A DNA stretch of 63,197 nt, filler included, from Hyphochytrium catenoides (GCA_900088475.1; 13 parts of 13 records of this genome joined end to end with filler, not necessarily neighbours in it); one strand, 5' to 3'. Shown: positions 32,712-39,831, counted from the first letter of the whole stretch. The notes: generated by a model not told the origin, from the sequence alone. Numbers and translations are program-made.

Positions 32712-33603
32712 NNNNNNNNNNNNNNNNNNNNNNNNNNNNNNNNNNNNNNNNNNNNTTAATTAATTAANNNNNNNNNNNNNNNNNNNNNNNNNNNNNNNNN
32801 NNNNNNNNNNNAACCCTACCCATAAAGAGAGCTCGCTGCTCTATTAGAAATTCCAACACATTTCGTTTGCTCATATCTCGGCTTCTACTGGGAGTTTAGA
32901 GCTGAAACTTGGGTAGTTAAGCTTTCCAGCTTGTAGTCCACATAGCTGTGCCCTCAGACTCCAACACCTGCGTCGTTGTTCTGCAAGATTGGAGATACAG
33001 CTCATCATCCTCTTCCTTATACTGGAACGGATGGTCACTCATCTGTTAGGACTTGAAAGCTTCAGACTTTGACACCTACCCAGGCATGGAAGGATAGGCA
33101 ACCAAAATTCCGTTGGTTGTTATTAGCAAGAGTTGCCTCCACTCCTTGGGTTTGGCACAAGCGCACAAGGATCTGCTCTGGGATCAATAGATAGACTTGT
33201 GGAGAGCGCATTTAGGTTTGCAGAAGAGGTGCAAGTATCAAGTCACCTGTCATAGTGTCATAGAGCTTTTAGGAGAGAAGGTTTTCTCTCCTTTCACCTT
33301 TCTTGTCAACAGGCTCCTTCTTTGGTTTGGCTTTGTTGTCTCCACCACCTGATAAATTTTCTAGGGGAAAACTTTATGTTAGGAAAGACCTATTCTTCTT
33401 TCCTCTGCATGCTAAGCATAAGAGAGGAGACTCTCAGTCTCGCTTGTCTCATTTCCGCAGAACACATTCTTATCGCTGACAGAACCTGCTGTCGCGCTTG
33501 CCGAAGACTCACTTGTTGAACTGTGATCGACGCTGCAACCAAAAAGTGTACAGCGGACGACGCAGAGGGGAAAAAACTCTGCATATAACAAAATGGAGAT
33601 TAG

Positions 33604-34314
33604 TTATTGCGAGCCCGAAGTGCGAGCCTTAATTTCAACCCACAGGGGCTTCAGCATAAATGGACTTTTTCGTATTGTCTGTGTGTCTGTGTGTGTGTTT
33701 GTGATCAAAATTTCACTATTTATTTTTCATCAATCACTGTTTAGGTTTTTCTTTGGGTTGGCTCTTTGTGTACTTTTGGTGATATGAAAGGGGTCAGAGA
33801 AGAAACGAAAGGGTTTTTATGAACATAACTCGAATTTGTAACGCGAGACGTATCACCATAAACCGAGACACATCGCGTGCGTCCACGCGAATGTTGTATA
33901 AGTACTCTCATTATACCTGAGACGCATCACCTACAGTCCTGTTTTTTTAGCTGTAGGAGCTGAGGGTGGAGGTGACATGTCACGCGACTCCTGCAGCAGT
34001 CAAGAGTTGAGAAAGTTTCGCCATTCACTACCTGGTCAATCACTCACTCACTCACGCACTCACTACTCTGCTGTAGGAAGCGTGGGTGAACGAGTAAGGA
34101 GATGCTTTAGAGAGTCTACCTAGGAAATACAGATAGAACTAGTTCTCAGTTCTAGTTCTAAGGCCTTACATGTAGAAGGAATGAAGAGTTCTTGGTGTTA
34201 TTATTTGTACAACTAAATCAGTGATCCAAGCATCTCCACTAATAATACAGCCGAAGGCTGGATTACGCACTAGTAACGTCGGGCGAGCCCTAGGCGAAGC
34301 CTAAAGCTATTGAT
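33604..34314 (+). mobile_element. Insertion in the 5' LTR with Helitron/Helentron(HINE)-like ends
   Basis: Absent from the 3' LTR. Hairpin CAGCC-GAA-GGCTG (34248-34260) is followed by CTAG|T (34270-34274), and a second hairpin TAGGC-GAA-GCCTA lies at 34291-34303. Imperfect sub-terminal IR GCGAGCCCGA/TCGGGCGAGC and internal (GT)/(ACTC) microsatellites are also present. Confidence 0.55.
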
Positions 34315-34320
34315 AAAAGA

Positions 34321-34399
34321 GTACGTTTGGTGTATGGTGCATACTGGTTAGATGCCGGCATCAAAGACAGAAGTCCTGGGCTCGAATCCGGAGCGTACA
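34321..34399 (+). ncRNA. tRNA-like unit in the 5' LTR (T stem one base short)
   Basis: Acceptor stem GTACGTT/AGCGTAC plus discriminator A, D stem GTGT/ATAC, A-box-like TGGTGTATGG and B-box-like GCTCGAATC. Confidence 0.65.
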
Positions 34400-34694
34400 A
34401 ACTTCTCTCCGGTATATCCAGACACCCCCCAATATTAATTCAAAGTGCTCACCACCAAATAACAAAATCCAACATGGTGTACGCTCCGAGCGATTTAACT
34501 CGGGCAACATATTGAGCCATTCGGTTCTGTGACACGGATGACCATCACAGTTCCATTTCAATCTAGAGCTTACAGAGTTCTCTAGATTTCGGGGGAGTGT
34601 TGAACTGTGATCGACGCTGCAACCAAAAAGTGTACAGCGGACGACGCAGAGGGAAAAACTCTGGTATATAAACAAAACGGAGATTAGCTAAAGA

Positions 34695-34780
34695 GTACGT
34701 TTGGTGTATGGTGCATACTGGTTAGGGTGTCGGCATCAAAGACAGAGGAGAGGCCCTGGGCTCGAATCCCGGAGCGTACA
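34695..34780 (+). ncRNA. tRNA-like unit in the 3' LTR; anticodon not assignable
   Basis: 7-bp acceptor stem GTACGTT/AGCGTAC, D stem GTGT/ATAC, TGTC/GACA central arm and T arm CTGGG-CTCGAAT-CCCGG. Discriminator A34780 is followed by TTTT at 34784-34787 (Pol III terminator-like). Confidence 0.72.
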
Positions 34781-35062
34781 AACTTTTCTCCGGTATATCC
34801 GACAGCCCCCAATATTAATTCAAAGTACTCACCACCAAATTATTAATCTAACATCACTTGCTCATGTTGCAATCTTCACATTCACTAGTGCTCAAATACC
34901 TTTCTCCTCGTGATTAGTTATACAGCCATAGCCAACCAGCTCAACTTGATCGGTCATAGCTCGACCCTGAGTTGCTGATGGGTTTGCAGAAGGACGCTGA
35001 ACAGAGGGAAGAACAGAACAAATCTGTTCGAGAGAGGATCTCTACTGAAGCAAAACTCTTTT

Positions 35063-35200
35063 GTGAAGGAAAGGGATCAACAACAACAAGGCCCGCCTAG
35101 GAAGAGAGATAAGCCCAAGAACGTCTGTAAGGCTTGCAGAGAGACTGGGCATTGGGCCAATGACTGTCCTCTTGGGAAGGGCCAGTGTCTTACCCTGGCT
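35063..35200 (+). pseudogene. Retroelement gag zinc-knuckle fragment
   Basis: CKACRETGHWANDC matches CX2CX4HX4C. The flanking frame is broken. Confidence 0.6.
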
Positions 35201-35317
35201 TTCCAGTGTTGGGTGCTACAATGCTCGTTGTCAGTAATCACTCTCTATACACACCTAGCTCTCAGAGGCATAGTCGTTACGGGTAAAACTGTGTTATGGG
35301 TGAAGAGAGTCGTGTGA

Positions 35318-35998
35318 GGAGAACTCACTGACCTCTTCTTTTGAGTAAAGGGACTTGTTAGTAGGAGGACGGATTTAGGCGCAGATTGATCATCAGAGCA
35401 CCAAGAGAGACGTTCTTTCAGTGAATTGACAGATAATCATCAAGTCCCTTTGTTATATCTTCATCTAGACGGAGCTTCAGACAACATCAACGTCTACCTC
35501 TGCTAAATTTCATCAGGTTATGTTGACTCCCCACACTCGCTGTTGGTGACTGCTGCTTCTCTGCTCATCTGAACGCTGGCGTGACGACCCTGTCCTATCA
35601 GGATGGGATTAAAGGAAGGCCGAGTTCATCCGCACAATATCGCCACTGTTCTACGCAGCAAGGACCAGTATCCTAACTGGTCAAGCTGCAGCGAATGCGA
35701 AAGAAGTCCAGACCAGCCACAAATGGCTGCTAGAAAGCGTATGCTCCAGCCACATTGCTGGAGATCGCTCACTCTTTCTTTCTTTCAGAGGGTGGTGGGG
35801 AGAATTCGCTGACCTCTTCTTTCTTTTGAGAAAAGGGACTGCGTTAGGACGAGGATGGAACGCTGCGCAGATTAATCAGCAGAACACCAAGACACATTTC
35901 ATTATGTCAATTTACAGATAACCATCATCAACAAGTCCCTTTGATATACGTTCATCTAGACAGAGCTTCAGACATCATCAACATCTACTTCTGCTAAA
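35318..35998. repeat. Diverged ~190-200-bp direct repeat pair
   Basis: GGAGAA..C.CTGACCTCTTCTTT...CAAGTCCCTTTG...TTCATCTAGAC.GAGCTTCAGACA.CATCAAC.TCTAC.TCTGCTAAA at ~35318-35507 and ~35799-35998. Confidence 0.7.
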
Positions 35999-36354
35999 GC
36001 TTCAAAACTATTTAAAATAGTTGGCATAGCCAGAATAGCTCTAGATTGTGGGACCGCAGCTGGGCTTATAAGTATCCGGTAGTATAGATGACGGTCATTA
36101 TACTGTCCAAATCTCAGCTTCCAGCTCTTTCTAGTTGCTGAGATATCCCTATTACAAGTTAGCACAGTTAGCTGCTAGTACTACGTACGGCGATAGACCA
36201 CCATCTAAATGAGTGGCTGTGAGGCATCCAAGTCCTCGGATGCCAGTAAGGCCGGCTCATCTGGTCCGGTCCCCACTTCATTCATTCTAATCTCACTTTC
36301 CAATTTCCCAAGTACCCCATAAGTCAACATCATCATCTAAGAGATTGTGAGTGG

Positions 36355-37900
36355 TAAATGGCATCGCTGAGTTCATTGTTGCCATTACTTTCTTCTGAAA
36401 CCGCTTTCTTTTGGAGATATCGTCCCACTTTTCAAGGCAAGAAGATCAGCAAGTCCTCCCACGGACACAAAGTCTATATTGTCCATTTCTCTTTCCAGTT
36501 TCATTATCAAGACCTATTTCAAGCGGCCAGAATAATCAACAAAACAAGCTCTCTTGTGGTTATGATATAAAAGCTACAAGGGATGGAGGACTACCCTGTT
36601 TTTGGCGATGGGGGCTTATCTCGATGAACTGAACCTCCTTCATCATGTTGACAGGAGCCAAAAATCCCCTGATATCTCCTCAAAGAACAAGTTCAAGTCT
36701 ACGTCCAGGACTACGATGCAGACTTCTTGGCTAAGGAATGACAAAGGGCCCTTAAACAAGATTGTTTTGGCAGTAGCTGACAGCATTATTTCAATTCTAC
36801 CTCGTAGAGGAACTGCGAGAGAAGCTTGGCTCAAATTGGATAAATCATTTTTTGGAGCATAAGTGCGAACAACAATGTGACTACTTCTAATTTCTTATCG
36901 GCAAGGGTAGATGAAGACAAGACATTAGCCTATTTCTGTGCGAGGAGAGAAGAAAGGCTTGTTTTACTTTGAGAAATGTTGGAGAAGAAAGATTTCTACG
37001 ACAACCTCTATAGGGCTACAGTACGTATTATGGCCCTTCCACCCTCATATGAAGGTATCGCTCAAGCCATCCAAGTGGGTGGAACACAGGAACTATGTGC
37101 AACTGCCATAGATGATATTCTTATCGGAGAACAACACCGAAGACGTGCTATGCGCTACCAACCAACAAGAGTTATGATGAAGTAGAAGGCTTTGGACCAT
37201 ACTCTCTCCATCAACAAAGGATGACGGAACCCATTATCATCATCATAAGAGTCCAGCAACAAGGCTCATCACTCAGCATCATCATCATCAAACAATAAAG
37301 TTCGCGACCAATAGCAGGAGTGCTCAATTCGCGGAAGTCGCAGCCAACATCCTCCGGAGAGATGCTGGGAACTCGAGGAGAACGCTTCTCACCGACCGTC
37401 TTATTGAAAATCACTCTCCAAGGGATCTGTCAACGGCTTTGAAGAAGTCCATGACATTCCTTCATCAAAGAAGAAGACTTCTTATCGTGAAGCAGTAGTT
37501 CCCATACTAGGAAGAACTGAAGGACAAAACCAGCTCATTACTAAGGGAGCATCTCAACAACCAACTAAAATATCGCTTTCCGAAGAGAAAGCACGACTAG
37601 AGTCAACCAACATCAAGGTCCCAAGGATCAAAATGAAGGAGAATTAAACATTTCACAGGCCTCGAATCAAGAGAAATTGACGCTGACAACAACATTCTCC
37701 ACACTTTCTATCTAGCGCTGAAGCAATCAGACACTGTGGAATTTTCTAATGATGAACTCGACGCGTTATCAAAGACGCTAAGGAAACAACATCTCCTCGA
37801 CCTCGCTGTTCAACGTACAACACGAAATCTGTGCAATTGAAACCCAAGCGTCAGGCTATTTCTTTCCTAGCGGGTCTACAGCATGCGGGAAGTGTTGAAT
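36355..37900 (+). mobile_element. Degenerate Ty1/copia-type element: frameshifted gag, no pol, PPT and start of an LTR
   Basis: KLQGMEDYPV/W..MGAYLDELNLLHHV...TAREAWLKL resembles copia gag. The region is nearly identical to 39350-39831. PPT-like GCGGGAAG is followed by TGTTGAA at ~37893. Confidence 0.7.
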
Positions 37901-37949
37901 ATTCAGATTCGGCCCTTCACTTTAGTAGGGAGGAGTTCGAGCTGTAGAG

Positions 37950-38013
37950 AGGTGTTGGAGTCTGAGGGCACAGCTATGTGGACTACAAGCTGGCAAGCTT
38001 AGCTACCCAAGTT
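37950..38013. repeat. LTR 5'-end segment also present in inverted orientation at ~32907-32970
   Basis: TGTTGGAGTCTGAGGGCACAGCTATGTGGACTACAAGCTGG.AAGCTTA.CTACCCAAGTT matches the reverse complement of 32907-32970. Confidence 0.8.
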
Positions 38014-38262
38014 CTAGGGCTTATGGTCAGTACCCCTGAATACCTTAGGACTGACTGTTCTGGACAAGGATATCTCTATGACTTAATATCTTAGGTTTTA
38101 TCTGGAATAGTTGGCATACTGAGCATAGGCTCTAGCTTGGGGGCCCCAGCTGGGCCTATAAGTAAAGCACTCACGCCTATTGACATTATCCAATCATCCC
38201 ATTACAAATTCAGCAGAATATTATAGTGGCATACGGAGCAGCAGTGAGTAGCTACTGCGGCA

Positions 38263-38712
38263 GTGGCATCCACCCAGAGAGGGGAAAGCAGCATAGGCAT
38301 CAGACCAAGAGCAGAGCTGGCGGCGGAAATGAGAATACAATGCCAACTCGCCCATGAGAGAGGTATGGAGACCTTGATCTTAGCTGATACTAACGGCGTA
38401 TGCACACCCTTAGACGACAGACTGTCGGGTGGGCTGAACAATGGGGACACCCACTCCGAAACGGTGACAAGCGTCCTAATGAGTTTGGAGCTGACAGATA
38501 TCTTTAGCCTAAAACATCCATACCTGCAAGCCTGGACATGCACGTCAACTCGGGGAGGACAGGTAGCCACCCGAATAGATCAAATCTGGGCCTCATCTCT
38601 ACTGGCTGAGCTATGCAGCGACATTTTCATAGCCAAAATGAGACTAGAGAGAGGTGACCCCACGCTCAGTGATAGCAGACTTAGCCTAAGCAGAAACATT
38701 ACTGGGAAATGA
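38263..38712 (+). mobile_element. LINE-type AP-endonuclease (EEP domain) fragment
   Basis: ILADTN (GDFN equivalent), LTDIFSLKHP, AWT and TRIDQIWAS appear in the L1/Tx1 endonuclease motif order. Confidence 0.7.
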
Positions 38713-39536
38713 TGGAGCATTGCTACGAGCAGAACGTTAGCAAGGCCAACATAAGGAGAGAGACGGCAAGGCAGACATCTACCACGAGCACCTCCCGCTA
38801 ACACAAGGCCAGGAAAGGTGAAATGGGGCAGGCTTACTCTCACAAAACCCAGACAAGCAAGGAGGTCGACGAACCAGATCATGACATGGGCGCGAAGCGC
38901 TCGAGAACTATGAAAGGACTAAGCCTTCCGTAAGCTACTTCGGGAGAAATAAGAGAAGTGCCAAGGGGTAATAGTAATAGATCGGCTAAAAGAAATGTCT
39001 GCACCCCTATTGTTGAACGGGTGATTGAGGTCAAGGAGTCGCAATGGACCAGGAAGATACCAAGAGCATGGAAGTACCTAAAGAAAGCCGTGATGATGGA
39101 TGCAGGCAAACAAGCCCTAGGCTAGACAACCGGGAGACAAACAAGGAGCAAGGAAGCCAACAACTAAGGGCGATACGTAGACAACTTAGTGAGGTAGTAG
39201 GCAGATGGAGCAATCCTGCTACAGCCAGACACAGAGGAGGCCTCGGCACATATTTTCAGCCATACGAGCACTTTTTAAAGGGAAACTTTCAGGCACGATT
39301 TCGGCCCAAAATCACCTCTTTTCGGAGCTTTCAAAGAGTGACAGGGGGTAAATTGGCATCGCTGAGTTCATTGGTGCCGTTATTTTCTTCTGAAAGCGCC
39401 TCGTTTTGGAGATATTGTCCATTTTATCAAGGCAAGAAGAACACCAAATCCTACGGACACAAAGTCTCATATTGTCCATTTCTCTATTCATTCTCATTAT
39501 CAAGACCTATTTCAAGCCCCCAGAATCATCAACATA

Positions 39537-39831
39537 ATGAGCTCTTTCTTGGTTACGATATCAAAGCTACAAGGGATGGAGGACTACCCTGTTTGGCGAT
39601 TGAAGATGGAGGCTTATCTCGATGAACTGAATCTCCTTCATCATGTTGACGGGAGCCAAGGATCCCCTGATATCTCCTCAAAGAACAAGTCCATATCTAC
39701 GTCTAGGGCTACGATGCAGTCTTCTTGGCTAAAGAATGACAAAAGGGCGTTCAACAAAATTGTTTTGGCAGTGGCTGATGACATTGTTCCACTTCTACCT
39801 CGTAGAGGAACTGCGAGAGAAGCTTGGCTCA
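39537..39831 (+). mobile_element. Ty1/copia gag N-terminus (open frame, truncated by scaffold end)
   Basis: ISKLQGMEDYPVWRLKMEAYLDELNLLHHVDG...WLKNDKRAFNKIVLAVADDI...TAREAWL fits the DUF4219/Retrotran_gag_2 pattern. Confidence 0.85.

Follow-up and report, generated by a model that had tools for sequence, protein, structure and literature searches.

A terminal-repeat retrotransposon in miniature (TRIM) occupies positions 33514-34853 of the window analyzed here, a stretch of 63,197 nt made up of 13 Hyphochytrium catenoides records (GCA_900088475.1) joined with filler, and its primer-binding site (PBS) is complementary, in register, to the 3' end of the tRNA-like unit that lies in each of its own long terminal repeats (LTRs) and to an appended CCA that the DNA does not encode. 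LTR retroelements are generally held to start reverse transcription either from a tRNA borrowed from the host or, in the Tf1 group, from their own 5' end folded back. Judged by its sequences, the family described here would be the first in which the tRNA of the LTR is indicated as a possible primer, against the answer given for all families examined by Kojima (2024; PMC10886601). If such priming does take place, it would represent a third priming strategy and would assign a function to the 'top half' of the tRNA-like units found in LTRs; the element would be independent of host tRNAs, with a primer supply that scales with copy number, and the very high copy number of the family could in part be explained. 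If a matching host tRNA exists, the element would be a TRIM that captured, or that mimics, its own primer tRNA, and this bears on the origins of chimeric LTRs.

The primer-binding site and the tRNA-like unit

The piece of the window that was analyzed (32812-39831, ~7 kb) is a nest of decayed transposons, in which a preliminary description had recognized a complete TRIM with a TCACT target-site duplication (TSD), TG...CA LTRs, a PBS, and a polypurine tract (PPT). All of these are found in the sequence and the boundaries hold, although the interruption of the 5' LTR by about 709 bp (33607-34315) had gone unmentioned. The element has LTRs of 256 bp, an internal region of 123 bp, a TSD, and a PBS and PPT that abut the LTRs, as is typical of TRIMs, and no conserved open reading frame (ORF) was found within it. 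Its 5-bp TSD, TGTTG..CA termini, and LTR-abutting PBS are those of Copia-mobilized elements, and the same TSD, the TGTTG..AACA ends, and the blunt CA/TGG junction between LTR and PBS suggest an element of the Ty1/Copia type.

The 14 nt of the PBS (TGGTGTACGCTCCG, 34475-34488) comprise, as had been described, the complement of the last 11 nt of the tRNA-like unit (CGGAGCGTACA, 11 of 11) and of a CCA that is not encoded, the LTR reading AAC after CGGAGCGTACA. Two independent boundaries set the register of this match, the LTR end and TSD for the PBS and the 3' end predicted by ARAGORN for the unit, and the chance of an 11-nt match in a fixed register is 2e-7. The only other near-matches to the PBS in the window are the two LTR sites themselves, on the opposite strand (11/11 nt). 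The TGG of the PBS would pair with the CCA, and since TGG abuts the LTR-terminal CA, a CCA-tailed primer would yield a blunt cDNA end of the Ty1/Copia style, while priming without CCA would extend the cDNA end by three bases. The combination of a TGG for which no CCA is encoded with a blunt CA/TGG junction speaks for a CCA-tailed primer and against simple folding back of the transcript.

All 7 bp of the acceptor stem of the unit are paired (GTACGTT/AGCGTAC, with one G-U pair), and the T arm of the unit in the 3' LTR is canonical (CTGGG-CTCGAAT-CCCGG), the B box of this copy being one mismatch from canonical. The D and anticodon regions are irregular, with an anticodon loop of 9 nt and about 11 nt where a tRNA has two, part of which, by eye, is a 7-nt duplication. 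When ARAGORN was run at default and relaxed score thresholds, with 150 shuffles of the 7-kb piece as the control, no tRNA was called at default settings, and the relaxed runs gave exactly two matches in the 7 kb, 34321-34399 and 34695-34780. The 3' unit is called at 95% of the default score, and the 5' unit as well once this is lowered to 92%; none of the 150 shuffles had any match at 95%, and 0.1 matches per 7 kb were obtained from them at 90%. A threshold of 80% was rejected as evidence, as the shuffles then yield 2.8 matches per 7 kb.

Because it is matched by relaxed ARAGORN and by neither default ARAGORN nor the Rfam tRNA model, the unit is tRNA-derived and near-threshold and is not a canonical tRNA gene; only its 'top half' (acceptor stem and T arm) is retained. 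The two intervals are identical to those that the preliminary description had called cloverleaf-like, a term that is upheld at 92-95% of the ARAGORN score and is not upheld at the default score or by Rfam. The claim that the acceptor and T arms are kept beside an irregular anticodon arm is likewise correct for both 7-bp acceptor stems and for the 3' T arm, the 5' T arm being one C short. The A- and B-box-like motifs mentioned there (here TGGTGCATACTGG, an approximate box A, and GGGCTCGAATCC) and the TTTT behind the 3' unit (34784-34787) are real. By its motifs, which include a TATA-like box at -30 and the T4 run in addition to the A- and B-box-like sequences, the unit can be assigned to the RNA polymerase III (Pol III) type. 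The 5' LTR is without TTTT owing to a single T>C change at 34405, which most other copies lack.

A high-copy family of the Helenus kind

The family was surveyed in contigs from three sequencing runs of the source organism (X1, X2, and X3), where relatives of the stretch with at least 80% likeness number 945, 466, and 303 contigs, respectively, and where the locus defined by the TSD junction is itself present in all three. In X1 the summed word depth is 3e4-1.8e5 over the LTR, PBS, and internal region vs. about 165 in the unique right flank, and therefore hundreds of copies are present; an LTR word depth hundreds of times that of the unique flank is that of a repeated, mobilized family. The variants described here are majority variants among those listed, and minority variants may exist. 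Most other copies have T, not C, at 34381/34761, which gives the canonical B box GGTTCGAATCC, and most have T at 34405, which places TTTT behind the 5' unit too, while no listed majority difference falls in the PBS or in the last 11 nt of the unit. The majority copies would thereby be more gene-like than the present one, which fits a working Pol III unit, and the match between PBS and unit appears to belong to the whole high-copy family, not to this copy alone. At least one subfamily has GTACGTC as its 5' acceptor strand, and its U5/PBS stretch, <80% like this copy, is too different to align.

The copy at 33514-34853 is itself dead, with diverged LTRs and a disrupted 5' LTR. Its 5' and 3' LTRs are ~90% identical, and the insertion is therefore old. 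In the intact LTRs of other copies position 33606 is joined directly to the tRNA-like unit (joint 33606>34710), and because their contigs make this join the 3' LTR is regarded as the intact form. A few fragments with a likeness of 95-99% also occur in a soil metagenome from 2025. Searches of other kinds gave no relatives: neither protein searches, made with ORFs that cross the TRIM and with a gag fragment, nor exact-protein look-ups in the contigs had a match; a metagenome scan with the unit pattern had 0 matches and one with an 18-mer PBS pattern had 4, all by chance and inside bacterial genes; and of two viral-contig scans one had 0 matches and the other a single chance match in a phage.

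TRIMs with a tRNA-like sequence in the LTR have been defined as Helenus (TRIMp3). The 113 families of rust fungi have 5-bp TSDs and Copia partners, the many further ones of bivalves, wasps, and fish have 4-bp TSDs and Gypsy partners, and one family is from Selaginella (Kojima, 2024; PMC10886601). The tRNA-like sequence was proposed to be a Pol III promoter, and the TRIMp3 type to have originated by insertion of a short interspersed element (SINE) into an LTR (Kojima, 2024). The preliminary description was wrong in attributing tRNA-derived LTRs to 'Ajax' elements of Phytophthora, as it is Helenus that bears tRNA, Ajax has 5S rRNA in its LTR and comes from nemerteans, and neither was described from Phytophthora (PMC10886601).

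The present family is a repeated one with tRNA-derived LTR sequence containing box A (TRGCY..YGG, approximate) and box B (GGTTC), and the copy at 33514-34853 can be classed as a decayed member of a very high-copy, non-coding, Copia-style TRIM family of the Helenus/TRIMp3 kind. It is most like the fungal (Pucciniales) Helenus, which it resembles in size (LTRs of ~250 bp around an internal region of ~120 bp, ~630 bp in all when the insertion is left out), in being non-coding, in its 5-bp TSD, TGTT...ACA ends, and G-rich PPT ending GGGGGAG, in the location of a tRNA-like unit with box A, box B, and a T run within the latter half of the LTR, and in its high copy number and Copia-type neighbors. 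It differs from Helenus in the greater degeneracy of its unit, where additional bases separate the acceptor from the D arm, and in that the PBS is neither of the half-tRNA-iMet type (GGTTATGAGCCCA) nor of the tRNA-iMet 3' type (TGGTAGC..) but matches the element's own unit. Motif searches of the consensus sequences in Data S1 of Kojima (2024) for the PBS, the LTR start, and the unit 3' end had no match in any family, and kinship to published Helenus is one of style only, plus a GTAC acceptor core shared, by eye, with one lineage; the comparison with Helenus that had been proposed earlier thus yields agreement in kind and style and no published consensus with the motifs of this element. While a tRNA in the LTR was already known, the match of a PBS to the element's own LTR would be new and an exception to the Helenus rule, and no report of LTR tRNA/PBS complementarity was found in the searched literature after Kojima (2024).

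The acceptor stems of rust Helenus (Data S1 of Kojima, 2024) show, by eye, paired changes between families (TCCT/AGGA, TCTG/CAGA, TACT/AGTA, and CACT/AGTG) within a constant frame, G-C-G...C-A-C, that has a C2-A71 mismatch. These paired changes suggest selection on an RNA acceptor helix, though it is not used for priming there, and the stems look family-specific rather than host-like. If family-specific stems are the case here too, then a host tRNA with the same 11 nt would be pure coincidence.

Other known systems share parts of the arrangement. Cassandra and Ajax are TRIMs in which both LTRs likewise bear the Pol III promoter of a small RNA, but the gene captured there encodes 5S rRNA, which lacks a 3' CCA and is unrelated to the PBS. 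Tf1 and Tf2 also have an element-borne 11-nt complement to the PBS, such that the primer could be element-derived. The Tf1 primer, after Levin's work, consists of the 11 nt at the 5' end of the mRNA, which RNase H releases, and is without CCA. In contrast, the complement in the present element is the 3' end of an internal tRNA-like fold, and its PBS starts with TGG, for an added CCA. RNAs of the mascRNA type consist of an acceptor/T-arm minihelix with a non-functional anticodon region; they are cut from long Pol II transcripts and processed by RNase P, RNase Z, and the CCA-adding enzyme. The present unit is like them in combining such a minihelix with a degenerate anticodon region; mascRNA-type RNAs are not known to prime reverse transcription.

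How the family may be primed

Our tentative preference, held at somewhat less than even confidence, is that the LTR encodes a private primer and that the CCA-tailed RNA of the unit serves to start cDNA synthesis at the PBS of the same family. With about two LTRs per copy, and solo LTRs besides, many hundreds of loci would be transcribed by Pol III, most of the transcripts ending at the T4 run, and the acceptor/T-arm minihelix would be a sufficient substrate for RNase P, RNase Z, and the CCA-adding enzyme. A CCA-tailed RNA of ~90 nt would result and would anneal to the PBS of rarer full-length transcripts, made by read-through or by Pol II. Primed in this way, the minus strand would be synthesized by the reverse transcriptase that an autonomous Copia partner provides, the family thereby supplying both template and primer. 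The enzymes of tRNA processing and CCA addition need only an acceptor/T-arm minihelix, for which mascRNA is the precedent, and only the parts that these enzymes need are intact in the unit. The preliminary description had taken the PBS to be templated by the primer tRNA, which is so in retroviruses; the title of Lauermann and Boeke (1994) says that the primer sequence is not inherited in Ty1, and copying of the PBS from the primer was rejected as a general rule, as it fails for Ty1-type elements. Since the PBS of such an element is not copied from its primer, the match between PBS and unit would need upkeep by selection.

Several points weigh against an LTR-encoded primer. The LTR tRNA was considered as a primer by Kojima (2024; PMC10886601), who found no complementarity to the PBS in ~250 Helenus families and PBSs in TRIMs and Helenus that match host tRNAs, as do those of their partner elements; this survey shows that tRNA-bearing LTRs normally do not prime. 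The particles of the partner would also have to accept a non-host primer. Complementarity in the present element ends at 14 nt (15/16 over the first 16), and there is no extra pairing between unit and template past the PBS as there is in Ty1 and Ty3. A copy of the 11-mer in the genomic RNA, 76 nt upstream of the PBS, could mask the latter in cis. Owing to its degeneracy the unit is not matched by the Rfam tRNA model RF00005 at E<=10, even in a search of 121 nt alone, and its thermodynamic folding is unremarkable (z about -0.5). Finally, no RNA run containing the stretch was found in the sequencing-run search.

A host tRNA ending ...CGGAGCGTACA-CCA, shared with the Copia partner, is a sizeable if doubtful possibility as the primer, in which case the unit would be a descendant or mimic of that tRNA and only a Pol III promoter; mimicry of the primer tRNA might, with the same degree of doubt, have been selected, for instance for co-packaging. 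Priming by host tRNA is the rule in every TRIM and Helenus family studied (PMC10886601), a C at position 6 would give GTACGCT/AGCGTAC, a plausible acceptor stem of a real tRNA, and the bases next to the PBS, AGCG, are not matched by the unit, which leaves room for a true primer unlike the unit beyond position 63. On the other hand, the primer tRNA and the captured tRNA would have to be the same species, and 11 of 11 terminal bases would have to be kept while the D and anticodon arms were rearranged beyond recognition, a coincidence unseen in the ~250 families of Kojima (2024; PMC10886601). No tRNA with this 3' end appears in Kojima's supplementary tRNA/PBS figures or in the full-text literature, where a search for a PBS or tRNA 3' end with these letters gave only unrelated primers and one simulated RNA, although this is weak evidence.

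It is improbable, in our estimation, that the elements are simply inert relics in which the complementarity is a historical accident, such as the insertion of a tRNA-derived SINE into the LTR of an element that used the parent tRNA. The state of the present copy, with its ~90% identical LTRs and disrupted 5' LTR, agrees with this, as does the origin of TRIMp3 proposed by Kojima (PMC10886601). However, there are hundreds of copies, most with PBS, unit 3' strand, B box, and T4 run intact, and the arrangement was therefore present and tolerated, if not used, during a large burst. Least probable by far is Tf1-like self-priming or a helix in cis, in which the 11-mer in R/U5 would fold back on the PBS and either be cut as a primer without CCA or mask the PBS: the complement does lie on the same RNA and has the length found in Tf1, and self-priming LTR families are mentioned in PMC6934838, but the TGG that separates the LTR end from the 11-mer match would have a chance of 1 in 64 and would add three bases to the cDNA end, the 11-mer is located inside the T stem and acceptor of the unit and not at a plausible transcript 5' end, and the helix is absent from the minimum-energy fold of 34321-34500.

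Features of the element and its surroundings

The coordinates of the TRIM and of the features within it are collected in Table 1.

Table 1. Parts of the TRIM and of its tRNA-like units, in positions of the window.
Feature	Positions	Strand	Remarks
Left TSD, TCACT	33509-33513	+	identical 5-mer at 34854-34858
5' LTR, left part, U3-like, begins TGTTGAAC	33514-33606	+	~93% identity to 34598-34690
Weak TATA-like CATATAAC in left part of 5' LTR	33582-33589	+	
Insert in 5' LTR, ~709 bp of unrelated repeats, foreign to the element	33607-34315	.	from alignment; copies elsewhere are without it
5' LTR, right part: tRNA-like unit and U5-like tail ending ..AACA	34316-34474	+	~90% identity to 34690-34853
tRNA-like unit, 5' LTR	34321-34399	+	ARAGORN at 92% threshold; acceptor GTACGTT/AGCGTAC, 7 bp
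5' LTR unit, details		+	T arm one C short; discriminator A at 34399
CGGAGCGTACA, 3' end of 5' LTR unit	34389-34399	+	exact complement of PBS positions 4-14
PBS TGGTGTACGCTCCG	34475-34488	+	first base directly after LTR-terminal CA
Remainder of the 123-bp non-coding internal region	34489-34590	+	no further complementarity to the unit
PPT GGGGGAG	34591-34597	+	abuts 3' LTR; internal regions of rust Helenus end in similar style
3' LTR, intact, 256 bp, TGTTG...AACA	34598-34853	+	
TATA-like TATATAAA	34665-34672	+	exactly 30 nt upstream of the first base of the unit; putative function
tRNA-like unit, 3' LTR	34695-34780	+	ARAGORN at 95% threshold
3' LTR unit, acceptor strands	34695-34701 / 34773-34779	+	
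3' LTR unit, A-box-like TGGTGCATACTGG	34709-34721	+	approximate box A match
3' LTR unit, T stem-loop	34756-34772	+	B box GGGCTCGAATCC at 34758-34769
CGGAGCGTACA, 3' end of 3' LTR unit	34770-34780	+	exact complement of PBS positions 4-14
3' LTR unit, discriminator A	34780	+	
TTTT run, Pol III terminator-like	34784-34787	+	4 nt past the 3' LTR unit
Right TSD, TCACT	34854-34858	+	locus with this junction present in runs X1-X3

The insert in the 5' LTR is bounded by ..GATTAGTTA and AAAGAGTACG.., possibly with a duplication of TA, and contains a (TG)n run and CACT repeats. Two of its parts, 33788-34031 and 34215-34315, are themselves very high-copy in runs X1-X3, and 34235-34314 is also found in the soil run, where there is a repeat boundary at 34314.

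No autonomous partner with the same PBS or LTR ends is present within the 7-kb piece, and none of the Copia remains around the TRIM has its PBS. These remains include two diverged Copia 5' regions with a gag N-terminus (PF14223, DUF4219) at 36356-36862 and 39351-39831, which are 84-89% alike and ~3 kb apart, and a CCHC zinc knuckle (35123-35170) is found just downstream of the TRIM. Another two direct repeats (~200 bp, 84% alike) are located at 35313-35519 and 35793-36000; behind the first comes GGTTATG..., with which the half-tRNA-iMet PBS widespread in rust Helenus and Copia begins, and a purine run lies ahead of the second. This pair (35313-36000) may be another decayed TRIM, one without a detectable tRNA-like unit. 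An ORF at 38263-38712 is similar to the endonuclease domain of long interspersed elements and has three remote relatives, of <=42% identity, among 1.8 billion representative proteins, so few that the transposons of this genome must be poorly represented in public protein sets. The TRIM region is enclosed by a 64-nt inverted repeat (32906-32969 and 37950-38013), the arms of which are 97% complementary and ~5 kb apart.

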